From positions 1-37,119 of the forward strand of contig NW_021835937.1 in the NCBI RefSeq assembly GCF_006345805.1: DNA of 37,119 bases. Direction: 5' to 3'. This stretch comes from Octopus sinensis (lineage: Eukaryota). The stretch's first letter is position 1. Each line of letters begins with the position of its first letter. This document shows positions 1,508 to 29,956 of the stretch, piece after piece. The notes beneath the pieces were generated by a model. The model was given only the letters and a program-made list of their open reading frames with translations. It did not search any database and was not told the DNA's origin. Position numbers and translations under genes: made by a program.

Positions 1508-2888
1508 TCAATTTTTAGGTTTTCGGGTCCACGGTGTAACAGATTTTGGATATATTTTGGGTCCAGTGTATCCCTCACGGTTCCACACCGTCCTGGGCCT
1601 ACTCTCAGCAGGTGCGTCATCAAGACCAAGAACAGACCGAACATTACTGTCAGTCTCCTTTTCCTCCTTCTTTTCCCCATTAGTCCGCTGCTTTCCCCAC
1701 ACACCTTTGGCAGGTTTTGGTTTAATCACTTCTGGCCACTGAGCCTTCTCGTCTTCTTCCGTTGACGGTGTATTTGCGGAGACACGTGGACGGGGAGGAG
1801 GGGGAGTTGGGCCGAAAACATTCGAATAAATATTCTTCTTGGGGATTCTGCCAAGTCGGGAAGCCCAAAACCCACGCGGCATATTCCTTCGAGACACAGT
1901 CAGGGGATCGACCCTCAGCTCTGAGAAAAACGCAAATTCGCTAAGATCTTCTGTGTTTTCCCCAGAATTAGGATTTGGTGGGGTTGTGATGAAGTCGACG
2001 TAGTTTCGTGTGCAGTCCCCTGAGCAGTGCTGTGATGCAATGTGAAGATTCAGCTCCACTTCAGTGCTAAAGGCATTCAAAGGTCTCTGGTAGTAGCACA
2101 TATCAATCCGGCACACGAAATGAGTGGAATCCAAATGGTTATCCAAATCAGGCAAATCTCTATATTTAATTAATATACATATATTATAATTGAATTATTT
2201 AAATTGTAAATTATTTAAATTAATAACCTGAAAAAAACAAATGTTTCTGGACATAGTGGGCAGTAGTGGTGATCCAATTTTTGATGCGAATAAAGAGCAT
2301 TTGAGTCAAAAAAGCGCTTGTGGCATATTTTGCACGACGGATGCAGAGGAATATTCTGTTCAGCACAGTCGTAGCCCTCACTCCGGTGTCTGGCCAAATC
2401 CTGCCGAGTATAGTTCCTCCTCTCGTGCGTAAAGAGCTTAAATACACACAAAAACCAAACTTTGCAGTTATCAGTGCACAGGTCACAGTAATAGAGACCA
2501 TGGCACTTCTCCATGTGCACAACGTAGTTGGAAAAGAACCGAAATCGAGCCCTGTGTTGACAGAACTCGCACATGTGGTCGATCAGGTCGCACAAGTCGT
2601 AGTACGCGTCCTCGTCCTCTGCATATATAGAAGATTCTTTGATATTTATATATTTTGAGGTATCCACTGTGCTGAATTCTGTCCATTCGTTTTTGATTAT
2701 TAGCTTATGTGAGTTGGATTAATGTAAACCTTGTCATTCTGGTTACGACAGACTGGACAGGCGTTGTCGTTGCATAGGACTCGTAGTCTGGCAGCACAGG
2801 TGTAGCAGAGGCAGTGGTTGCATTCGCCGTATGCAAAAAGTTCGATGTTGTCCATGCAAATGGGACATTGTATATCATCAGTGGACAT
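1508..2888 (-). CDS. ZNF598: E3 ubiquitin ligase ZNF598/Hel2 homolog (RING plus C2H2 array), multi-exon
   Basis: CPICMDNIELFAYGECNHCLCYTCAARLRVLCNDNACPVCR RING, then FTHERRNYTRQDLARH, HPSCKICHKRFFD, HHYCPLC, THFVC, AFSTEVELNLH, matching ZNF598 order. Introns: about 2704-2729 (26 nt), 2437-2460 (24 nt), 2160-2227 (68 nt). Confidence 0.87.
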
Positions 2889-8062: not shown

Positions 8063-11000
8063 TTACACAATTGGGAGTGGAGGATATAGAACACACTCTT
8101 CCTTAGGGTCTTCCTTGGGCTCATCTTTCTCGGTCAACTCTCCCACCAACTCAGGTGCAAGTTGCCTCAGTCGTTCCACAGTCTCGACCAACAATTCGGA
8201 ACCCGATTCCTGACGACAGAGCAACCTCATCGACTTGACAACCATCAAAACAGTCTTAAACTGATCTAAAATGCCATTTCTCTGAGAAATAGATAAGCCA
8301 AATTAACCAATGACTCGTTCTTGTCTGACGAGGCTGCCATTGCACAAACCAATTCGACAATTTTCTTCCAAAAAACACCAAAGCTGTCACAACTCGCAAA
8401 AAAGTTGACATTTCTTATAAAAATCTGAGGATATAAAAAATAAAAATACTTTGCAGAGCATGGAAACAGCCCTTATCCTCACCACGTCCTCCCCTTCCTG
8501 ACTGCGAGCCAACATTCGACTGAATATAGGGAAAATGATCTGAAATAGCCACACAACAGCACACCATGCTAAAACACTGATTCCACGTCTGACTGCCAAT
8601 GACGAACAACCGGTCATGCACAAGAGACTTTTGAATGCAGTCGAATGAGTACAATCTGATAACAGGACGATCGTCCTGAGTGTATAGTGCCATTTCTATG
8701 TAGTTCATCAGAATATACGGCTTAGGAGAACACGCCACCAGTCAGAACTCTTCACTCTCTCTGAACTAGCCAACTGCACACAAACAGAACTGGTCGCGTC
8801 CATAACCTGCAGAATACACATTCAAATCAACTTTCAGTGATAGTTTTGACAAATATTCCGTGGCTACTGAGGGTTCGACGTCCTGTAACGTTTTCTCCTT
8901 CTCAGTGTGACCTATTTAGTTCAAATTGTCAAAATAACATTGATAGACGGCCGAACACAGAGCTGCTATGAAATGGACGAATGATTCCAGGTGGGTCACC
9001 TCTGCACAAAACCCCCCGTTCACAAGCTGCTCGAGGATATCCACTCCGATAGACAGTTTGGTCATCTGTATTGCCCCGATGGGGATTCGGTCAGTGCTCA
9101 CATAGTCAAACCACCGACTCAAATCATCGCCGGCGGAACATTGAGTCTCTAAATGGAATTTCAACATTATTGGACAAACTTTGCTGACAGTGACTTATCA
9201 AATTATCAGGCAGGACCACACAGGCAGTGAATACTTCAATGACCAGAAAACATATTGGGAGACCGTCGGAACACTCCAGCAGTAAATAATGATTCTGCAG
9301 GAAAGTGGCCACGAAACCCACAAGCAGCAAAGATGTCCGGGAATACTCTATTTTGTCCAAATTCAAAGACAAGAAACAAGTCATTAAGCTCATCACCTCC
9401 AGAATTAAATAGTCCTTTTACCTCATATGGAATCACCTCCTGGTTTATGAAGGAAGTAAGTATTCGGAGATACCCGTGGATGACTTCCTCCACCAGTAAG
9501 GCCGGATAAGCAGAACTGGTAACCAAATGAAGCACACATGTTTTGACTGACTGGAAAAACAGTGACAGTCGATCTCTGTTAATGAATCCAACCACCCAAA
9601 CCGATTATTGATTGCAACTCGGACAAGAATGTCATAAAAAAGAAGAGAGGGTTCTGACATACTGCAACCGTGCACTCCCACTAGGCAATTTGGATCGAGA
9701 ATACAATCAGTCAGTATCTAAACAGGTCTGGGAGTTCTTGACTAACCTTAATAAATTCAACAAGGGATTGGCTGTGTAGGGACTTCATATTACTCACAAT
9801 CATTTCAATCTTCCATTCGGACACAATGCTCTGTGCCTTGCTCAATGATGGACATTCACCCCTCAAAGTGTTCTCGTTGTTGTTTGACGAAAAAAAGTTA
9901 AACAAAGACGAGAGTGCGCCTGTAGAGTTTTTTGAGGTTTTTTTGAGATCGAGAACTTTATTAAGAGAACGCTTCTTCCCACTTTCAAACAGACTGTCCA
10001 CCTGGAGTATATAAACAACGACCAACTTCAATCAAAGTTGATGGGAGGAGTCTGGCTGTGTATAAACTGAGGAGAGCCTCCAAAACATTCTTCCATCCAT
10101 CACGCATGAGATCCCCGTGCTGTGCCACCAAATCAAAAGCAGTTTTTCCAGCCAATTGCGCCTTCTCATTATTTGCAAAAATTTCGACAAAAGACGTTTT
10201 CCCGCCATTCTATTAAAAAATTGGTCAACCATTAAAAACGTGAGAATCATTAAGGAGATGCGACATTCTAAACAAGGCGATTGTGATCGAGTCAAAAATG
10301 GCAATCAAGTTAAAGTGGACTGCAATCGAAGCACATTTCCTAATCAATTAATGATATTTAATTAACTTGTAGGACTCGAGGATATCCTGTACTGACATTG
10401 CAGTTATTTCCTTATCAAAAACGTAAGATAGAGCAGCCACAGAAGAACTCCAGAAGAGAAGAAATATTTCAGAGTCACACAAACTCCCTTCAGCCTGGAT
10501 ATAACTGTCGTTGGTACAAGTTTCGTGTTTTTTCTACAAATAACAGCGACCAATACATTCCAGAGATATTTGTCTCTACTACTTCCACTCTTGGTGGCAG
10601 TTATTACAATCTCAGACATCCTAGACTACAAGCAGGTGACTAACTTGACAGAATTATATATCTGTTTGAGCATTTCTGTACATTCGTTCAGGTTTTTAGT
10701 CCCTCCGACACTCTCAATAAATTCCTGAGGAAATGAGCAATCAGGAAATACGTGACATGTCATTGGTTTGTTAGTGGCTTGTAGTAATTTGTTGTGCTGG
10801 TCCACGTTGAGGACCATTATTCCATTGGCCAGGAGAAATGCCTCGTCGTAACTCCCAAACACTCCCTCATTACACTTCTACCAATATCCACTCACCATCA
10901 CCATAAAACGCCTCACGAAGACCTCCAAAATATTCGCAATGACCGGGGCCTCGCCTGGCAAATGAAAGTCGTCGAGGAACTTCCGAATCGCAGAGTCCAT

Positions 11001-12925
11001 TCTCAGACCAGCAAAGTCATACGACCTATCATCATTGACATACAACACAACTCCAAGAAAGCTGTCAATACATCTCTGTTGCTCTGCTTGCCAAAGAATA
11101 TTCCGAGGGCAGTAATGTCGATATATTCGTAGTATTCTGATATAAAAGAGACCAAATCCGCGGGATCACAGCTCGGAACTGCCCCCAACTCCACAAGTCG
11201 TTGAAAACACCGGCTTGGACTGTCCCCAAACATTTTTATACACTCATGCACTCTCTGCAAATATTTTTGTGAAATAACCTTCTTGTGCTCCATTTTGTGA
11301 CTTATATCAACGGGGCTGAGTTTTTGTGGAGTTTGTAGAACACTGCAGTGGTTCCCGTGTCGATGTATCGTTCGGAATGTGTCTAAAACGTGGTTAGACA
11401 TTCCTACCTGACATGGGAGAGGACATTTGGTTCCGTTTGTAAATATGTTCGAGAGGAGACAACAGACTGCGGAGTGAAGACATGCAGCTGGCAGAAAAGA
11501 CACCATTCGAGGAAGATGTCCCAATAAATGACACTTGCTGCAATAAGTTACTCCCTCACCTTAAAAAGGGCCGAGATTATAAGTTCGAGGACATTGGCGG
11601 ACGAGGGGTGGCAATCATAGTTAACGTACAACTGGAGGGGCACATCTTCTTGACTCAGGAAGCCACACAACAGTTCACAGGCGAGGTCATTGGCCGCAGA
11701 CACACACGTCCCACTCCCCAGCCGGCCGACCAGTTTGACAATATATAACTGACCATTAATTTGAACACTACTTCGAATGGAATTCTCAAAAATGGCAGTA
11801 ACTTTGAAAACATGTTGAAGGACAGAATCAAAGACCGACTGAACAGATTGAATGAATTAGTCCCCGCCAACTAAATTAATTCATTGGTTAACCAATATAC
11901 AATAAATAGCTTTTTCGACATTTCTGTTCGAATGAGAGGAGTGAGGTGTGTCTGGGATGACAAATTAGGAGTTGAGAGGACAATCGAAAGCAATTCCAGA
12001 CCAAAAACAACTCGAATCTCGTCATTGTGTTTGTCTTCCACGTCAATCAGAGATACGAGAAATCTCAGAATCTCCCTCGTGCATTTGTTGGAGACTCGAC
12101 TATCCACTGAGGCATTAAGTAGCCCGTCAATACTCTCGGTGGTGTGGGAGTCCAAGGAAGAGGTGTCCTCGGCAGATGGTTTGTCTGGTTGAATCGAAAC
12201 TGAGGGCATATTTGTGAATATCAAATAAATTGAATCGGTTATTATTCCTTCTAATCTTTTACGAATCCACTCTTAAATAGTTAAGTATTAAATAAATATT
12301 GTAATTAAATAAAATTAATACTAACTGTTGAGGTGGAGGTCGAAATAAAACGAGAAGCACCACCGCAGAGAGTCGCAAATGAGACCACAAGACAGACAAG
12401 TAACCAAACTAGAAGTCAAAATTGCTCCAAAAATCTTTAAAAAAAACTTTCAGTGACCAACCTCCACAATATTGGCAACTAAAAATTCCCCATTTTCCCC
12501 ATCAGTGACACTTTTGATGCCAACAATCGAATTAACTGTGATGAAAGCGACATTCGACTTTACAGATCGGTCAATTTGGGCTAAAAATAGTCATTTCGAA
12601 TGTACAGTTGGACAGAAAATACAAAATCTTTTTTAGCGTTTTCAGGTTTAGGAGGGAGAATTCGATCGAGCATTCTGCAGAGCGGGATAGGGCGTCAACA
12701 AATGTCTTGATGACGGGAATAATGTCAAATTCTGTTTAAATTTAAATAAATTACTTTCGGTGCTGATATTTGTCTGTAAGGAATCGAATTCCTCGATTAT
12801 TTTGAGCATTGACTCTGTAATCTGGAATATGTATAAAATAGGTATTAAAGTACCATTTTTTGAGAAAAATTACATTTTAATAAATAAATGTGTGATTTTG
12901 TTAAGTCGAGAATATGGTTTGCCAT
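8063..12925 (-). CDS. GBF1: GBF1-type large Sec7 Arf-GEF (DCB, HUS, Sec7, HDS domains), many mini-introns
   Basis: EILRFLVSLIDVEDKHND, HUS box LYVNYDC (about 11625-11645), Sec7 GLRMDSAIRKFLDDFHLPGEAPVI with the catalytic Glu, LNVDQHN, KAQLAGKTAFDLVAQHGDLMRDGWKNV. Introns checked: 11026-11051 (26 nt), 12272-12325 (54 nt). Start at 12925 is inferred from DCB-like exons and is less certain. Confidence 0.9.
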
Positions 12926-13189
12926 ATCAAATTAATATTCGTATTGTTTTAGGGTTCTATAACGTTGGTAAAAATTGCCACACAAGATAGTTCTATATTT
13001 AAATAAATTCTATATTTAAATATAGTTCTATATTAAAATAAATTTTTAAAAATTAATTTAATACAAACAATTTTTTTTATTATTAATAAAATAAAGTGAA
13101 CATTAATTAATTTTATATGTGTAAAAATGGAACTGATTGTATTTCCTTCCTCGTTATGTCCGATTTTTTTAATTAGACATTTATTTATT

Positions 13190-16100
13190 AATTCCAAGAT
13201 CACCGAGAAAGATAGGTCAAAACTAACTAATTAGGTGATCCCTTCCTCCAACAACAGCTGGACTCTCCTTAAATGATCTTCTGATGACCCAACCGTAACC
13301 CCGAGACGGCCGCCTTCTGAGTAAGTTCAAACGTTCCGCTTTCGAACAAGCAATTGCAAACGTCCAGGCTGAGCAGGCATACCCAACCGTCGGGGCAATC
13401 ACTTGTTGGTAGACCTTGCTGACACAATCTTTCAGGGGGAAGGGACTCTTCTTTAACAGAGCTTTCAAGACGTTCCACTTCCGAAGACCTTTAGCTAGTG
13501 CCTCCTCCACGTGACATGAGAACGTAATTAAGGAGTTGAAAACCACGCCAAGGATCTTCTGGGTACGCGAAGAGGGAATAGGATTGTCTCCAATGAATAG
13601 TTCCGGTCCATTCTTGAATTTTCTATCAGTAGTGAAGAGGGTGAATTTGGATTTAAATGCAGACACACACAACATATTTGCAGATAGCCAATCACATACA
13701 CGGTTAAGGTGTGACTGAACCATTGCAACAGCCACAGAAGGAGATTTATCTCTTGCAGCGATAATCAGGTCGTCCGCATAGGATAAGAACATAATGTCTG
13801 GGTCATTAGTAATATGTAGGTCATGTAAAAATAGGTTAAAAAGGAGGGGAGATAAAGGGGAGCCTTGTGGGACACCATTGGGCAGTAGTCTTGATCTTAA
13901 AGTAGTATTGTCAATACGGACCCTTCCGCGTCGGCCAGTTAAGAAATTTTTCAACCACAGTTTGATGTTCGGATGTAAGTTCGAATCAAATATCTTCCGC
14001 GTTAGAAGTTTCCTCGGGACAGAATCAAAAGCCTTTTGTATATCAATGGATACTAAGGCCGTCCGTAATAAACTGGGAGACAGAACACAAGTGGGTCGTT
14101 GTGGAACGGTCTGGTCTAAAACCGTGCTGGAATTCTGGCAGTTGTAGAACAGGAGAGATTTGCGTTAATACGAGCTTTTCCAGTACTTTCGATAAGATAC
14201 AAGTTATTGAGATTGGGCGATATGAAGAGGGGGCATCCTTTGGTTTCCCAGGCTTTAGAATTGGCGTAATTAGGGAGTTTTTCCATATATTAGGAATCGT
14301 ACGTAAGTTGAGAATCGTACGTAAGTTGATGGAGTCGTTATATAGTCTTGATAGTACGGTCTGTGCCCGGGGTCCCAGGTGTTTGAGGTGAACAGCACAG
14401 ATCTTGTCGGGGCCACAAGCACGGGTGGGACGTAGGGATTTAATAGCCTTGTCAACATCATCCGGTGTGAAGAAGGTGGAATACAATTCTGGTCGTGGTC
14501 CGAGCCGTTCAGTATGTGGAGTGCGAGAGAAGTTTTTATGGCTGATCGATACATAGTACTTCATAATCTTGTTTGTAAGTTTGCGAGCGGGTTCCGAGGA
14601 ATTGTGGGCAACGGCCTCAGTTCCTCCGTCCTCCTCGCCGATAAGGCAATTGATCCTTCTTAGCGTTTTCCAAAAGGTGGCGCAGGAATTTCTGTGACAT
14701 AATCGTCCAACGAGACGACTCCACTTGAGTCCGTTATTAGTCCGGATCGGTTCAGAAATTTTAATATTCAACGAACGTATAGTATAATATGGTCATTGGA
14801 CTTGTTTTTCTTCAGGGCATCCCGTTCTTTGATAAGTGCAGGATTTGTGATGATAATCTTGGATTAAACTTCTTGTATGAAGCGACAGGTATAAATAATT
14901 TATCGGCTTTCAAAATGATAGTGGACAGGATCTTGGCCGTTCTTTCCACCGTGCAATTTTCCATAGTAAGATCAAGCAGGCAGTCGTCCACATACGACCC
15001 GAAACCATGCCAGTTAGCCTTCGAGTAATTTTTGAACTTCGTAGGACAGCGCATTGAACAGAAAGGCCTTCTAAGTCTCAGTACAATAGGGTTATGGTCG
15101 CTCGAGAAACCATAACGAACATTCCACTAGATCAGGGGTCACCAAACTTTTTGCACTCGCGGGCCGGATTGACCCCAACACAATGAACGCGGGGCGGAGC
15201 ACGTGCATAGGATTATAATTTTACTAGAAATTCATAAGTGTGTTTTTTACAATAAAAACTAATTTAAACAAAAATAAAGTAAACAAAAATTTTAATGAGA
15301 GCTATGGAATTGTGATCTTTTTTTGATAAGTTCATCAATATTTGGTTTTAAATTGCTGCATCCTATCATGAGAATTGATTTTAAGTGTCCGTCAGTCAAT
15401 CTTGCACGATGGGCAGACTTAACATATTTCATCCTCGAAAACGTTTGCTCACATTGGTAAGTTGTGCCAAATATAGAAATCATCTTTATCGCAAAATTCT
15501 TTAGTCTCGGAAACTCATCATCCTTGAGATATTCGTAGAACTCAGCGAGTTTGGTCCGTCTGTGACAATCTTTGAGCTGTTCATTTGATTGTAAGTCAAT
15601 AACTTCTAATTGTAATTCATGTTGAACATTTTCAACATTACAAGAAAATGGATTTTCGAACAAAATTATATCGCTTTCAATTTTGTCAAGTTCAGAAAAC
15701 TTATGTAAAAAATGATGTTTTAATTCTTTGATAATTCCAATTTGGAAAGTAATGTCGATCTCATTACAGTTTGCCTCACAAAAACTTTTAAAACAAGAAA
15801 AGTGTGAAAACTGACGTCCTTCATAACAGAGAGATGTTCGTGGCATATTAAACAATAAGCTTTCTGCTTTAATTCATCTTTCGCAAAAAAATACTTCAAT
15901 TCCCATAATTTATTGAATACACGGCATTCGCGGTCAACCTTTCTTTTCATATTAGACATAGCAACAAAGAAAAATTTAACGTTAATGCTGATAAGTTTTT
16001 TTTCGAATTAATCTTGCAAAATAGTTTAATTTTTTAATTAAAGTTTTTATTTAAGTTAATTATTAAGGTATTAATTGAATATCTCGAAATAGTGCGCGGG

Positions 16101-16677: not shown

Positions 16678-17400
16678 TCAGAAGGATCTCCCTCGCTTGA
16701 ATCGGGGATCACGGGGATTATAATAATTAACTGGCTTACCCGTCTTTGGTCTATAAATAAATAAAAAAATCATATTGGAGTGTTTTCGGGTGATGGTTTG
16801 ATTAAAACGTTCTATAATCCCCTGTGTAAGGGGATTGTTTGGTTTTTTATGTATCTGAACTACATTGAACTCTTTGCATAGATTTCTCAGAGACACATTC
16901 TTGAATTCTGAACCATTATCTGATTGCAAAATTTTGCAAGGTAGAAAAAGTGATCTTAAGTTCTTGCATACTTCTTTTGAAGATTTATGAAAAAGTGGTC
17001 TGAAAAATGCAAATCTGAATAAATTGTTGAAAGACCTACTATAAACATCGATGACTGTTAAAATCCATCTGTAATTATTATTTGAGACTGAAAACTTTTT
17101 TAGATCTACAAGATCTAGCCGAAACCTTTCATTTGGAGAAAAAGCAAAAATATGATGATTCATATCACCAACCTACATTAAAAATTAAAAAGAATTAAAA
17201 CTCTTAATGGACAGGCAAATTTACATACTTCACAATTTCGAATGACTTTTCTGATTATGTCATTTTGAACAATGAAGTATCTTTGTCGACACTCATATTC
17301 AATCTTGTTTTGCCCATGTCACATATTTTCGATTTTTTTAAAACACTTGTTAAGTTTTCAAAGTTCAGCTTTTGATTTTATACAAAATATAAAATCGTAA
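16678..17400 (-). mobile_element. rve integrase-core fragment (Ginger/KRBA2-like DDE transposase)
   Basis: ERFRLDLVDL, WILTVIDVYSR|FAF, ILQSDNGSEF, PNNPLTQGIIERFNQTI (D,D,E present); apparent 21-nt intron; second copy at about 35640-35975. Element ends not found. Confidence 0.78.
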
Positions 17401-19510: not shown

Positions 19511-20232
19511 TCAAAATAAATCGTGATCCGAAGCAATAACATCGACCGTATTCCACGTAAGTTTACCTTCTGCGTCCTCAAAACATATCGGCATCTTCCC
19601 AGACTGAGTTTCACGAAATTTCGACTTTTCATTCAAGAACTATCAACTCTCAGACATCAGCAAATGCCTTTAACAGAAATTGGAGTATGTCCTTCTTATC
19701 TTTCCCAGCCGCAATATCAAATACTGATCTCCTGAACTACCAATACAGCCAATTGGAGTAGACTTTGTCCGCCATAAGCAAATCCTCCGTCTTTTTGGCC
19801 AACGACATGACTATTTCAATGTTTCCAGACTCAACAGCCCAATGTAGAGGAGTCATTCCCAACTTTCGGGTCAGTTGACTACCCTATACCATATCTACGA
19901 TATTGACATCCACTTCAGCGGACAGGAGTAATTGAACTGCGTCCAAGTGACCCATTTGACAGGCAATATGAAGAGCAGTTCGGTTTATTTTATTTTTAAT
20001 GTTCTTTTCGATACCCGCCACTAGAAGGGATTTGAGCATTTCGCAGTTCCCAGCATAAGCAGCGTGATGGAATGTTGTATTTCCCAACTGTAGGAATAAT
20101 AATAGATTTATTGGTTACATTGTCGGTAGAAAAACATATTGTTGGTTCTAATATTGATTTGGGAGAGGAGATCTTGGAATTTTTTACAGAATCAATAAAT
20201 GAACCACAAGATTTATTCATTTCAATTGACAT
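19511..20232 (-). CDS. GABPB1: GA-binding protein beta-like ankyrin-repeat protein, 5 exons, about 202 aa
   Basis: FSTDN|LGNTTFH, KNKINRTALHIA, DVNIVDM|LGMTPLHWA and DK|FRRSVFDIA align to GABPB FTTDW-LGTSPLH, RTKVDRTPLHMA, DVNAKDM-LKMTALHWA and SKFCKTAFDI. Introns: 20088-20118 (31 nt), 19863-19889 (27), 19737-19763 (27), 19640-19667 (28, GC-AG). Confidence 0.8.
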
Positions 20233-21852: not shown

Positions 21853-24746
21853 ATGCAATATCCATTTTTTGACGCTAAAAAACGAGAGGAGAACAGTGGA
21901 AGGAATATTCCAGACCCAAAGGATGTAAGAGACATTAAACAAAGCTTTAATCGTCATTGCACAACTCTCGCCTCAAGGACCGCAATATTGCTACCAAACG
22001 TGATTATTACATCTCTTTGGCTCACACGGTGTGCGACAAAATGGCTTCCCGGTGGATCAGAACGAGCCAACACCATCACAACTGGACTCCAAGGTTTTCC
22101 TTGATTTTATTTTTCCAGAGAATTTATTATTTGTCCATTGAATTCTACGTCGGTCGTCTTTTGATAAATTCCATGATCAACGTTGGAATAGACGGGCAGT
22201 GCAAAGAAGCCGTTTATCAAGTATGTCCAACATGTTCTTATTTAACAAGCTGGGACTAGATTTGGAAGAATTAGAAAACATGGAACCTGACATTGGTTTA
22301 GGAAATGGTGGACTGGGAAGACTGGCTGCCTGTTATCTTGACTCGATGGCTACTTTGGGCATTGCAGGCATGGGTTATGGACTGCGCTATGAGTATGGCG
22401 TATTTACTCAAGTAATTTACGATACCGACCATGTCTCAATTTTATTTAAATTAATTAAGAGAGAGGAGCTTAACAATTGGTTAAAGTACAGCAATCCCTG
22501 GGAGAGGTGCATCCAGGAATATATCGTTCCTGTTAATTTTTACGGAAAAACAATCAAAGTGGATGGACAAACACAGTGGATTGACACTCAAGTGACCTTT
22601 CTTTAATAAGTAGGTTGTGTATGCAATTCCCTACGACACACCTGTCCCCGGATATGGGAATAACCACGTCATAACTATGCGTTTGTGGGCTGCCAAACCC
22701 TCAGCTGTATTATTATTGGATTGCTGTAAGTTATTAGTTTTAGTCACTGTCTAGTCAATTCAGGAGATCACGTCCAAGCTATGAGAGACCCATACCTTGA
22801 TGAAAGCATAACACGTGTCCTCTACCCAAATGACGAGGTATTCATGCCCTTTATTTCAAGAGATTTGAAGGTAAGGAACTCCGTCTCAAACAAGAGTACT
22901 TCCTGGCCTCAGCGACTCTCCAGGATATTATTCGGCGGTACAAGGACTCGAAAGAACCTAGGACTTCATTCGACCAGTTTCCAGAAAAGGCAATTGGTCA
23001 TTATAAATTAGTAGGTGGCCATTCAAATGAACGATACGAGTCCATCCTTGGCTGTTCCTGAATTGATGAGACTGTTGGTGGACGTCGAAGGTCTGGATTG
23101 GTCTTATTCTTGGGATATCTGCATAAGAACTTTCGGATATACCAACCACACTCTCCTTCCCGAGGCACTCGAGCGATGGCCACTAAAAATGTTGACTAAA
23201 TTGTTGCCCAGAATAATGCAGATAATCCATAAAATAAATCGCAAGCATTTACAGGTTGAATGTGCAGTGATTTTGCAAGGCGGTCTCTGAGTTTTGGCCC
23301 AATGACGAGGATGTCTTGGAGAGAATGAGTCTGATTGAGAGGATCGTAAACGTGTCAACATGGCCTATCTTTGCATAGTGGGGTCACATTCCGTCAACGG
23401 AGTCGCCGAACTTCACTCAAAATTAGTAAAAACTGACGTGTATATATATTTTGTATAAATCACAAGATTTCCTGATTTTTATAAAATGACTCCTGCCAAG
23501 TTTCAAAACAAAACCAACGGAATCACTCCCAGGAGATGGCTAGTCTACTGCAATCCATCTTTGACAGATTTTATTCGCCGTGTACGTTTAAAGTATTACT
23601 TTTAGCAAATTGGGGACGGATTCATAACAGATTTGCGTGAGTTGAACAAACTGAGGCCACTTGTGTCAAATCAACAAATTATTGACGAGATTTGTTTGAT
23701 AAAACAGGTTGTGTGTCCTCAGTATGTCATAGAGTAATAAAAATAAATTCGCTTTGTATGTTAAAAAGTTGTTTGGATTCTTGATTGACCCCTCGACCAT
23801 GTTTGATGTGCATATCAAACCAGTTCAAGAAAGTAAACGACACCTTCTGAGCTGCCTTCATATAATAACGCTCTACAACCGCCTCAAACGGGTCAAGGCT
23901 GGTTTGGATGACTACACTGTCGTCCCCAGGACTGTCATAATTGGGGGGAAGGCTCCTCCCGGCTACAGAATTGCAAAACTCATCATCAAATTGATATGCA
24001 ATGTGGCTGATGTGGTGAACAGTGATCCGGAGACCAATAAAGACCTGAGGGTGTTTGTCCTTCCGGATTATAAAATGTCGTTTGCAGAGAAAATGGTCCC
24101 TGCAGCTGATTTGAGTGAACAACTCTCACTCGCAGGAACTGAAGCGTCTGGAACTGGAAACATGAAATTTATGGTTGGTCAGTTGATTTATTGCCAGTTG
24201 AACGGGGCTGTCACTCTGGGGACGTTTGATGGGCCCAATGTAGAAATGGCCGAACAGGTTGGGATGGAAAATATATTTATATTCGGAATGACAATCCACG
24301 AAGTTAAGGAAAATTACACTTATGGGTATTTTGTAAGTAAAGAAGTGTAGATACAATCCTCGTTTTAATTATCCAAGGAGTCTTCAATTAATAGAATGTA
24401 TTGAACAAATAAGAGACGGATTTTTCAGCAGGGAGGAGCCTAATTTATTATGCGAAATATGTCAGACTATGCTCTCTGATGATCCTTTCATGGTCATGAG
24501 TGACTATGATGATTATATTCAGAAGCAGCTTTTGGTAGAGGCTGCTTACTTGGTATGTTGTGTGCCGTATTTTGATAGAATTCTAATGTGTGGAATACAA
24601 TGTGCTTGAACAACATCATTGCTGCTGGGTTCTTCTCTAGTGACCGTGCTGTGGCTCAGTATGCTTCCGATATTTGGAACGTTCCCTTGTCCAGGGATAT
24701 ACTGCCTGTCTTAGATGAATCTCAAGAATTCTCTGGTTTGAATTAG
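21853..24746 (+). CDS. PYG: Glycogen phosphorylase (GT35), full length, 15 exons, divergent active site
   Basis: [53 protein letters not shown]. Fourteen introns of 22-29 nt: 22094-22118, 22221-22249, 22433-22459, 22592-22613, 22726-22754, 22838-22860, 22990-23014, 23255-23279, 23440-23466, 23582-23605, 23708-23732, 24174-24197, 24326-24350, 24553-24578. Three 1-nt deletions must be corrected to keep frame. Confidence 0.95.
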
Positions 24747-25689: not shown

Positions 25690-27130
25690 TGTCACAGGCC
25701 ACAACTGTTACTCCGCCAGATATGTTACACCAACATCAAATTGTCAAGTTGGAAAAAACTTAAAACAGAATCCTTTGGTATATTTCTATGAATTCAAAGA
25801 AAACTTATAAATTTTTAAAAAAATATGATGTTTTTTTAAATTACAAATACACGTTAAAAATGCGTTTAGTGCAAGTAACAAAGGAAGACTTAGAATTACT
25901 TAAGGAACTTAAGAGCAATCCTGAGCTCGTATTCGTCAGCAGGACGCTTTCGCGGATGCAAAGATCAAGACTACTGAAATTAGCAAATAAATTTGATTTT
26001 TTGGATGGAGCTCCATATATCACTAAAGATGGACTTAACAAAAGAGCTCATGAAATTGCTTCGTTATTTCAGAACATCTTTTATTATATTGGGCCACCAT
26101 TGATCTTGCATACAGACAATGGTAAAGAATTTTGCAATGACCATGTCGCCCGTTTATGTGAAAAGTACAAAATAAACATGTCCGTGGACGACCAAGGGCT
26201 CCTTGGGTACAGGGACAGGTGGAAAGGTTGTAAGATAAATTATTCTTTAGACTAAATCAGAGTATCAAAAGATGGATTTCATCTAAAAGTTACTCTGATG
26301 AATGTTTTGGACGCTATTGCGATATAATCAAAGACATTGTTTTTGATTATAACAATACTGTCCATTCCACACACAAAAAAAGTCCCATTTAATCTATTTA
26401 TGGGCATAAAATATCCTATTGAAACATCAGAGGAGGAACTAGAATCATTGTTATTGCAAAATGATGACATAGAATATTGGAAGAGGAAAGGAATGAAGCG
26501 TATGTAAATATTCTGTTGGCAGCTGATAAAATGGCTCAGAGAAGAAAATGGAAGTATGACGAGGCTACTTTTAGTGTAGGAGAGATAGTAATCTTAAGGT
26601 ATTGGGATGTATAAACATGTAATTTAGGCAAGATAATGACGCTAACAAACGACAATATCCACTTTATGATGGATTAGAGATGGTGAAATACAAATTGTGG
26701 CAAAAGACGATTTTGTAGTAACATACAAAGTGAGACAGGTGACATGTATGAGAAAATACATGTTTCACGCTTAATTAAAATTGGGAATGATCCTTCTTTT
26801 TTGTGATTCTTGATAGAAAACGTTTTAAACTAATAAGAGGCTTTTAAAATTTTTTTATTAAAAAAAAAGAATAATTATTTATAAAAAAAAGATATGGATA
26901 AGCCAAAATAAATAGATTGCTAAATAATTTAAAACTCATATTTTACACGGTATGTTGGTTTTTGGGAAAAAATTCATGTTTCAGTCCAAATTTTCTATTC
27001 AGAAAAGCATATTTTTGCGAACAATTAGGTTATGCTTTGTATTAATTTTTAATTTTAAAAGTTTTTATTTCTATTTATATGAATTTTTAGTGTAACATAT
27101 CTGGCGGAGTAACAGTTGTGGCCTGTGACA
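25690..27130 (+). mobile_element. Ginger2/TDD-type integrase DNA transposon, internally deleted, nested in Buster
   Basis: Perfect 41-bp TIRs starting TGT (25690-25730 / 27090-27130); 5-bp TSD AAGTA (25685-25689, 27131-27135); ILHTDNGKEF and GRPRAPWVQGQVER|LNQ motifs; first catalytic Asp region missing. Confidence 0.92.
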
Positions 27131-28452: not shown

Positions 28453-29956
28453 CTAAGAACAAAGAAATTTCCCCGTAAACTACGATATAAGTAAAGACCC
28501 ACCTTTAAGTAATACTGGCAAATCTCCACTTCCTTCACAATCATAGAATATTCAGTCTGAGAACCCGTGTAGTCACAACTAGAGTTACTAAAACGTGGCC
28601 ACCCACAACATATCCACAGTAGTCGTTCGATTTTTTCCAGTTGATTCACAAAAGCTACCATTTGTGTAAATTTGTCGTCGAGGCCTGCCACTATTAAAAC
28701 ATGTGTAAATACTCTAAAAGATTATCACTTTGTTTATCGTTCAAATTTTCCAACGGGTCGTACTGTCCCAGAGAATAAGTCTCTCGAGAACTCTCATTCT
28801 TAAAACAAGTGAACCACAATGTCCTACCAAACTAATTTGTTTGACATATTTCCCAAAGCAGAAAACAAAAGTCCACAACGAATTGTTCTAAAACATTAAA
28901 GTTTTCAATCACTCCGGACACACAGTTGTCTCCACTGTAGAACTCGTGAATGTCAGTCCCTTCGAAGCCTTTGTGGGTGTCCACCTTCCCTCCCTAAGAA
29001 TTACCAAAATGGACCCACAGTTAAATTGAGACTCGTTTCTATCAATTCCGTCAGTTCGGAGACCGTCATTTCATTTGGTGCGGGGATTTTTAAATTATCA
29101 TTTTTGGGCAACTCATCTTGGTAACACGAAATTATATTCCGTTGCTGAGAATTTCTGGAAAAATCGAGAAACACGGCAAAATACCGAACTTTCCTCTCAT
29201 AAGAACAAAGTGTTTGTAATCCAATCGCAATTTGATAGACGCACGTACTGACCTCAGATATAGAAATTATTGACGGTTCAAATTGATCAAAACAAACATA
29301 GTAGACCATAACGTGCCGAGGAACATTCGTGGACAAACAAATGTCCCCGTCAGTGTAATTGACTGCCACATACGCATGGGCTGAGTAATATCGGGTTGAA
29401 AGTGACTCGAGGAATTTGACGTCTTGGACAGTCACATTCAAATCCTCGTCTTCTAAAATAGTGTCATTAACATATCCCATAAAGTTCATTTTCTCGTGTT
29501 TTTCTTTCTAAGGACATGGCGATAGGGGTACCTTGTCATTTCCGGAGTAGAATTGATGGACGTACTTTCCGTGGCACACCTCATATGTCCAGTACCCCAC
29601 GTTCTCAGTTTTTTATTTGTGGATTACTATGGAATGGCAGTAGTGGGATCTGAGGATTGCCTCGATGGTAGATGGGCCGAGGTTAAGGAATTCGATGGAA
29701 GTGGGGACCTGAGGTGAGTAGAGTTGGGATTTACGATTTGATTAGGAGTTGAGTACCAGCGTTTATTTTCGAAAATAAGAAGTGAATTGTTTTCGTCGTT
29801 TTTTATCTAGAAATTTTATATTTTTATTGAAATTACAAAAAGATTAGTTTCGTTGAATTTAATGTCGGAAAATTGGAATTCGATCGAGTCGTCATAATTT
29901 GGATTATTGCTGCCCGTCAGGCAACAAAATAGTGATATAAACAAAATATCCAACAT
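28453..29956 (-). CDS. ERLEC1: ER lectin ERLEC1/XTP3-B homolog (signal peptide plus two MRH domains), multi-exon
   Basis: MLDILFISLFCCL signal peptide; MRH1 GYWTYEVCHGKYVHQF...YTDGDIC...VYYVC...ISEVSTCVYQIAI..LCS; MRH2 WTFVFCFGKYVKQ...YTNGSFC...EVEICQY; introns of about 22-30 nt. Confidence 0.86.

Follow-up and report, generated by a model that had tools for sequence, protein, structure and literature searches.

The DNA analysed here is a stretch of 37,119 nucleotides from the Octopus sinensis assembly GCF_006345805.1 (contig NW_021835937.1, positions 1 to 37,119 of the forward strand), hereafter called the window. It carries a gene resembling animal glycogen phosphorylase (GP), which is among the most conserved and best-studied enzymes, and in this gene conserved residues of the catalytic, phosphorylation, and glycogen-storage sites have been replaced. 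The gene model was projected from an intact, putatively paralogous copy on another contig, referred to as L001, and has the following layout.

21853-24746, plus strand: GP-like gene, ATG to TAG, 15 exons
21853-22093, 22119-22220, 22250-22432, 22460-22591, 22614-22725, plus strand: exons 1-5
22755-22837, 22861-22989, 23015-23254, 23280-23439, 23467-23581, plus strand: exons 6-10
23606-23707, 23733-24173, 24198-24325, 24351-24552, 24579-24746, plus strand: exons 11-15
22094-22118, 22221-22249, 22433-22459, 22592-22613, 22726-22754, 22838-22860, 22990-23014, plus strand: introns 1-7
23255-23279, 23440-23466, 23582-23605, 23708-23732, 24174-24197, 24326-24350, 24553-24578, plus strand: introns 8-14
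22990-22991, plus strand: donor of intron 7, GC instead of GT (L001 donors are GT in 14 of 14 introns)

The 14 introns measure 22-29 nt each; 13 are GT-AG and one is GC-AG, which leaves 27 canonical splice dinucleotides out of 28. The window gene and L001 have all 14 intron positions in common, and the intron interiors have diverged beyond alignment.

The window protein matches the Pfam profile PF00343 with 957 bits (cut-off 27) over profile positions 2-713 of 713. Matches to human PYGB (1067 bits) and to the muscle form (2pyd, 1063 bits) are nearly full length, and solved GP structures align to residues 2-839 with E = 0 and about 56% identity. At this full-length identity to solved GPs, the fold of the predicted protein is beyond question, and both sequence and fold place the gene in family GT35. 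It has the domain order of the animal enzymes (rabbit and human PYGM, PYGB, and PYGL) over nearly their full length, and like them it has the Gly-rich helix GLGNGGLG, H377, N484, E672, K568, K574, and Lys680, the last within a conserved ten-letter segment.

Intron 12 (24174-24197) is 24 nt long, in frame, and stop-free, and the NCBI models of two sibling copies (P0001 and P0002) read it as the peptide VGQLIYCQ between TGNMKFM and LNGA. Standard annotation pipelines mis-model such tiny introns. The possibility that the extra segments are insertions in a processed pseudogene was rejected on account of their GT-AG ends, their presence in L001, and their ancestral intron positions.

Altered and retained motifs

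The motifs on which the comparison with animal GPs turns lie at these positions.

21877-21906, plus strand: degenerate Ser14 phosphorylation motif (11 protein letters; ERRKQISVRH in L001, RKQISVR in other animal GPs)
22295-22318, plus strand: GLGNGGLG, unchanged
22823-22837, plus strand: YPNDE, canonical YPNDN
23030-23044, plus strand: NDTSP, canonical NDTHP, with Ser codon AGT at 23039-23041
23138-23152, plus strand: YTNHT, unchanged
23228-23362, plus strand: altered glycogen-storage-site segment (Y404H, R426E, E433R)
23507-23521, plus strand: NKTNG, unchanged
23817-23843, plus strand: KPVQESKRH, canonical KRIHEYKRQ
24135-24170, plus strand: pyridoxal phosphate (PLP) segment of 12 residues, with the Schiff-base Lys680 and the glucose-site residues E672, S674, G675, and T676 kept and G677 conserved

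The KPVQESKRH motif was read both directly and via the spliced model. In rabbit numbering, which was verified on the PYGM sequence with K680 and K568 at their expected places, it contains the changes R569P, I570V, H571Q, Y573S, and Q576H, with K568, K574, and R575 unchanged. The Y573S change (TAC to AGT) requires two or more nucleotide steps and H341S in NDTSP (CAT to AGT) at least two. Position 284, the last residue of YPNDE and Glu in the window, is occupied by Asp in L001; the 13 other animal GPs in the comparison have Asn there. Alignments to L001 and to human PYGB place all three motifs as substitutions without indels.

Arg569, replaced by Pro in the window, is present in 13 of 13 aligned animal GPs and in 225 of 230 retrieved homologues. 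The pattern KR[ILFMV]HEYKR is likewise found in 225 of the 230, and KP.QESKR is confined to the window lineage. Residues retained in the window protein are K568, K574, R575, G135, H377, N484, E672, S674, T676, and K680, and seven of them (K568, K574, G135, H377, N484, E672, S674) are the same in the window, rabbit, human, and L001 proteins. The PLP lysine stands within the E-A-S-G-x-G-x-M-K signature.

Arg569 and Lys574 bind the substrate phosphate. When Arg534 of Escherichia coli MalP, the equivalent of Arg569, is replaced, kcat falls by orders of magnitude and the enzyme is nearly inactive. In human PYGM, p.Arg570Trp, which affects the same residue as Arg569, is listed in a McArdle patient (PMC7168270), a sign that this arginine is important in vivo, and a literature search for mutagenesis of Arg569 or Lys574 gave nothing useful beyond that listing. 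The window replaces the very residue affected in these PYGM and MalP variants. Those are single changes in enzymes that are otherwise normal, whereas the replacement in the window has become fixed in a duplicated lineage and is accompanied by a block of further changes nearby.

The regulatory sites differ as well. The phosphorylase-kinase site R-K-Q-I-S14-V-R, kept in L001, is absent from the window, which reads KREENSGR (K11E, Q12E, I13N, V15G). Three residues of the storage-site segment are changed, of which E433R is an alignment-dependent call as it adjoins a break in the reading frame, and the tower-helix residues Y262H and N270Y are changed too. Judged by these residues, the predicted protein lacks the defining feature of active phosphorylases (Arg569) as well as those of regulated metazoan GPs (the Ser14 motif and the storage site). 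A role as a storage-site glycogen binder or as a phospho-regulated subunit is unlikely because those sites have changed as well.

The initial annotation, made from the sequence alone, had reported KPVQESKRH, NDTSP, and YPNDE as substitutions and the GLGNGGLG, YTNHT, and PLP-lysine/EASG motifs as intact, and all of these readings are confirmed at the coordinates given above. Its N284E is correct as to the Glu, but since L001 already has Asp, the step within the window lineage is D to E. The statement that all splice sites are intact does not hold, given the GC donor of intron 7, and the glycogen-binding or regulatory roles that it had proposed lose support with the changes Y404H, R426E, E433R, Y262H, and N270Y and that of the Ser14 motif.

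Related copies, frame breaks, and rates of change

Closest among database proteins are three short NCBI models that bear the label Octopus sinensis (P0001-P0003). Identity to the window lineage of at least 90% is reached only by the fragment P0002 (91%), and P0001 stands at 89%. The third model, P0003, covers part of L001, which lies on the unplaced contig VCDQ01002408.1 (1.03 Mb, positions 8546-11432) and is an intact GP gene of 846 codons with 14 GT-AG introns of 22-28 nt. L001 has the canonical KRIHEYKRQ, NDTHP, RRKQISVRH, Y404, and E433. The window gene is colinear with it, introns included, at 72% nucleotide identity and 74% protein identity, and its introns resemble those of L001 in size as well as position. 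Common to the two are the lineage-specific residues Y75H, F285R, and H399I and an insert of 15 protein letters. No synteny was found between the flanks of L001 and those of the window beyond shared transposon families.

Both L001 and the window depart from 13 of 13 other animal GPs at the AMP-site residues Gln71 and Tyr75, at Asn284 of the 280s loop, and at His399. At Phe285, which is variable among the 13, the two share an Arg. Even the canonical L001-type enzyme is thus probably without the vertebrate-style control at the adenosine monophosphate (AMP) and purine sites, with the Ser14 kinase motif kept.

P0002 and P0001 derive from two further loci of the window type, L002 (VCDQ01004456.1, 0.96 Mb) and L003 (VCDQ01013216.1, 17.8 kb), both with about 96% nucleotide identity to the window and with the same introns. 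Both read KPIQESKRY, and the rewritten motif KP[VI]QESKR[HY] is therefore found in 3 of 3 window-type copies. Neither sibling is complete. In L002 the 3' part of the gene is joined to an inverted 5' part, and exons 4-10 are missing. In L003 a 2.2-kb insertion with homology to the reverse transcriptase of a long interspersed nuclear element (LINE) lies in exon 12, after which the contig ends. A LINE element with an RVT_1 domain at 13179-14733 of the window corresponds to 4833-6591 of L002 with 4.2% divergence. In both it lies upstream of the GP gene, in the same order, which makes the window and L002 syntenic loci; what sets them apart is that the GP gene is rearranged and that there are large indels of 194, 29, and 18 nt.

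The reading frame of the window copy is broken at three places.

21956-21958, plus strand: frameshift 1, one T lost (TTT to TT) in exon 1, codon 36; TTT in L002 and L001
22081-22082, plus strand: frameshift 2, one T lost (CAATCT to CAACT) in exon 1, outside a homopolymer; T present in L002, L001 in frame
23341-23351, plus strand: frameshift 3, exon 9, 4 nt shorter than L001 (SLIEEDCNKR to SLIERIV.R), with the break at about 23343-23350

Frameshifts 1 and 2 are private to the window copy, being absent from L002 at 96% DNA identity. Frameshift 3, at a site that neither sibling copy covers, may be a single 4-nt deletion or the loss of a codon together with a 1-nt loss. As assembled, the spliced coding sequence has 2538 nt; its frame is broken after codon 35, and translation from the ATG stops near codon 88. 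With three N inserted, an open reading frame (ORF) of 846 codons with no internal stop results. The three breaks, each a net loss of one base, sum to a loss of three, so that the raw coding sequence is a multiple of three and the last ~410 codons are back in the ATG frame. A product consisting of the C-terminal domain only, starting at an internal Met at 23360 after frameshift 3, is conceivable from the sequence.

As a control for indel errors, 1536 nt of a neighbouring transposon were compared with their L002 counterpart and held no 1-nt deletion, and indel errors in the window are therefore not widespread. Reading paths were also sought without a reference, with GT..AG introns of 18-40 nt allowed, but this search had no power to estimate the error rate, as known frameshifts were "rescued" by spurious introns.

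Over the longer term, the window lineage has changed fast and at particular sites. Protein identity to other animal GPs is about 62% for L001 and about 56% for the window copy. Between the window and L001, the proportion of synonymous differences (pS = 0.756) is saturated, and the nonsynonymous divergence (dN) is 0.166, which implies an old split with both lineages under purifying selection on average. As pS is saturated, a ratio of nonsynonymous to synonymous divergence (dN/dS, or omega) is not given for this pair, and relative-rate, stop-codon, and clustering tests were used instead. Tajima relative-rate tests with four outgroups counted 70-80 replacements unique to the window against 16-25 unique to L001 (P <= 1e-6). 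Among 397 columns that are invariant in 13 animal GPs, 32 are changed only in the window and 3 only in L001. By these counts, the rate of the window lineage exceeds that of L001 by a factor of 3-5 overall and of about 10 at invariant sites.

The changes are also clustered. Six of the 32 fall within 13 residues (V567I, R569P, H571Q, Y573S, Q576H, N579S; permutation P = 0.005), and 12 of the 32 are at positions listed as functional, whether in catalysis, regulation, the storage site, or the tower helix (odds ratio 4.1, P = 0.0008, a value that is indicative only, as the list was compiled from textbook knowledge after the changes had been seen).

The open frame limits how much of this change can have been neutral. 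New stops in the window coding sequence are expected at a rate of 119 per substitution per site, and none is observed in 846 codons, which restricts any neutral period to less than about 0.025 substitutions per site (95%). In 200 neutral simulations run to 150 amino-acid changes, the mean number of stops was 8.9 and the minimum was 2. At least eight nonsynonymous nucleotide changes are packed into the 39 nt of residues 567-579, and together with the multi-step codons of Tyr573 and His341 these are far beyond what a neutral phase of 0.025 could supply. The rewritten motif, common to three copies and containing multi-step codons, is old by this evidence, and the sequence record is that of a catalytic site rewritten while the reading frame and the 14 intron positions were still under maintenance.

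The more recent record differs from this. The three window-type copies together have accumulated 30 nonsynonymous and 17 synonymous changes, giving an omega of 0.48-0.62 that differs from neutrality (omega of 1) with P = 0.013-0.08, depending on kappa. The branch leading to the window copy accounts for ~10-12 nonsynonymous and 5-6 synonymous changes, a ratio no lower than on the broken copies. The saturation of synonymous sites suggests a long-term dN/dS below about 0.2, and the recent omega is well above the long-term average. This pattern is in keeping with constraint having been lost recently, after which each copy acquired lesions of its own.

Several claims of the initial annotation can be judged on these data. 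Three 1-nt deletions had been corrected to open the frame; three net -1 breaks are indeed present and no stops remain once they are corrected, but the third may be one 4-nt deletion. The gene had been called preserved, which fails for the present copy in view of its three frame breaks, its GC donor, its broken siblings, and a recent dN/dS of about 0.5-0.6. The absence of stops, the 14 introns, and the old shared motif support a non-catalytic or re-specified protein in the past of the gene, but for the copy as it stands now this is doubtful. A canonical paralogue, which was to be sought, is found in L001, although its presence in the same genome is putative. As for a dN/dS near 1, which was to mark a plain pseudogene, the ratio among the copies is 0.48-0.62 (P = 0.013-0.08 against 1), and the comparison with L001 is saturated.

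Source of the DNA and neighbouring genes

The octopus has a GP gene of its own (P0280), which encodes the same protein in O. vulgaris and O. sinensis and spans 42-43 kb on a chromosome (L005, CM016862.1). This protein is 60% identical to that of L001 and 53% identical to that of the window, and thus no closer than other animal GPs. An octopus paralogue was considered as the origin of the window gene and rejected, as the octopus GP is a 42-kb chromosomal gene only 53-60% identical. Thirteen of the 14 tiny window introns are at positions of octopus GP introns, which identifies them as ancestral introns that have shrunk and not as insertions. A neighbouring ankyrin-repeat (ANK) gene also has two tiny introns, and the small size is therefore a property of the whole genome and not of the GP gene only.

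Dicyemids and myxobolid myxozoans are the only animals in which introns below 30 nt have been reported (PMC13644364). The renal sac of O. sinensis is home to the dicyemid Dicyema japonicum, whose genome has 36.7% GC and 49% repeats (PMC6736024), values with which the composition and transposon load of the window agree. On this sequence evidence, the window is most likely DNA of a tiny-intron parasite, a dicyemid mesozoan of octopus kidneys. No dicyemid-labelled record appeared among the matches of any search. Unplaced contigs of the O. sinensis assembly (GCA_006345805.1) carry GP genes of 2.9 kb with introns of 22-29 nt that are annotated as octopus proteins (P0001-P0003), and the contigs of L001, L002, and L003 look like dicyemid DNA inside the host assembly and its annotation.

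The neighbourhood of the GP gene is transposon-rich, and the following features were noted in it.

1508-2667, minus strand: C2H2 zinc-finger gene
~8400-12300, minus strand: Sec7-domain gene, apparently with many tiny introns
15292-15855, minus strand: ORF with a hAT dimerisation domain
16678-17163, minus strand: ORF with an integrase core (rve)
19737-20087, minus strand: ANK gene with two introns of ~27-30 nt that start with GT and contain in-frame stops
25788-26255, plus strand: ORF, integrase-like by eye only
29001-29489, minus strand: ORF weakly similar to the glucosidase II beta family, below threshold (PRKCSH_1, 18.7 bits, cut-off 23)

Explanations and meaning

Our preferred reading, with a probability of roughly 0.55, is that the window gene was once a non-catalytic GP paralogue and has recently become a pseudogene that does nothing. 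An old duplication would have placed a divergent second version of the GT35 enzyme beside the canonical copy in an animal with tiny introns, most likely a dicyemid. Since its separation from L001, the window lineage has evolved several times faster and has lost Arg569, His571, Tyr573, His341, the Ser14 motif, and residues of the storage site and tower helix, while the fold, the PLP lysine, the glucose-site residues, the 846-codon frame, and all intron boundaries were kept. From what was kept, we infer that the gene was long expressed as a dead-enzyme or re-purposed paralogue that could bind PLP and probably a glucan at the old active site, where phosphorolysis would hardly have been feasible. 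In the sequence as assembled, constraint has since relaxed, with three frame-breaking deletions and a GC donor in this copy and with the siblings rearranged or interrupted by a LINE.

Several observations weigh against this reading. The recent omega is below 1, so some constraint may persist in at least one copy. Each of the three breaks is a net loss of one base; a T run holds one of them and an A run perhaps another, and single-base losses are the usual error type of long-read consensus sequences. The absence of stops and the 27 of 28 canonical splice dinucleotides are as compatible with an intact gene as with a very young pseudogene. Part of the damage in L002 and L003 may be due to poor assembly of non-host DNA at low coverage. 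The L001 and window types may be paralogues in one genome, or they may be orthologues from two co-infecting dicyemid species.

The main rival reading is that the gene is still in use, with the deletions being assembly errors and the GC donor being spliced, so that an intact 846-residue protein of GP fold binds PLP without phosphorolysis; its role may be, for example, that of a glucan- or PLP-binding protein or of a partner of the canonical subunit. We regard this as a tentative alternative that deserves attention but is clearly the less probable one. The open frame over 846 codons and the 14 introns held at 22-29 nt would be expected from it, two of the deletions are absent from a 96%-identical sibling, each of the three lesions amounts to a net loss of one base, the excess of replacements is non-neutral and aimed at functional sites, and omega among the copies is below 1. 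It fits less well that one deletion lies outside a homopolymer and another is perhaps 4 nt long, that 1.5 kb of neighbouring transposon shows no 1-nt deletion against L002, that the window branch has a ratio no lower than that of the broken copies, and that the siblings are fragments. The changes at the storage site, Ser14, and tower helix also make the nature of any remaining function uncertain. At the opposite end, a plain long-dead pseudogene, in which the motif changes would be uniform neutral decay, would account for the three frameshifts, the GC donor, the broken siblings, and the raised recent omega. It is nevertheless improbable, as the extra 120-150 replacements would by neutral decay have brought about 8-9 stops where none is seen, dN is 0.166 against a saturated dS, the changes are clustered and enriched at functional sites, and 14 intron positions are kept despite interiors that have diverged beyond alignment.

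An active enzyme of new specificity, transferring glucosyl groups with another nucleophile or acceptor or holding phosphate by K568, K574, and R575 alone, would agree with the retention of these three residues and of G135, T676, K680, H377, N484, E672, and S674. We know of no GT35 member with another chemistry. Such an enzyme is hardly to be expected, considering how widely Arg569 is conserved (13 of 13 animal GPs, 225 of 230 homologues), that a missense loss of the same Arg in human PYGM was found in a McArdle patient (PMC7168270), and that the frameshifts weigh against it. Least probable of all, and by a wide measure improbable, is a cephalopod gene, whether an octopus paralogue or one acquired by transfer from parasite to host. 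The closest database proteins do bear the name of Octopus sinensis, but the contigs so labelled are unplaced, the octopus GP is 42 kb long, chromosomal, and only 53-60% identical, and the neighbouring genes of the window have tiny introns too, so that the whole stretch is of that type.

Set beside known systems, the window protein differs from animal GPs in R569P, H571Q, Y573S, H341S, N284E, KREENSGR at the Ser14 motif, Y404H, E433R, Y262H, N270Y, and the three frame breaks, and it differs from L001, which is intact, has canonical motifs, and shows 3 changes at invariant columns against 32. As in pseudoenzymes generally, catalytic residues have been lost with long-term retention of fold and frame; unlike these, the window copy carries frameshifts. 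A search of the paper library for a GT35 pseudoenzyme found none. To our knowledge, and as far as that library shows, no natural member of the GP family has lost Arg569, His571, and Tyr573 with its frame under selection.

On the practical side, unplaced contigs of the O. sinensis reference hold genes of a tiny-intron animal that are annotated as octopus proteins. If the window gene is simply a young pseudogene, its interest is modest, as one more step of gene loss in a parasite, with an unusually clear two-stage history. It is possible, although we lean against it, that dicyemids keep, or until very recently kept, a dedicated non-catalytic GP paralogue and that the frame breaks are assembly errors. 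If so, this would be the first GT35 pseudoenzyme, with the phosphate, phospho-regulation, and storage sites rewritten and the fold, the PLP lysine, and the glucose site kept. If the protein is or was made, it would represent a natural experiment on the GP fold without phosphorolysis and would illustrate how metabolic genes are re-used or discarded in an extremely reduced parasite.

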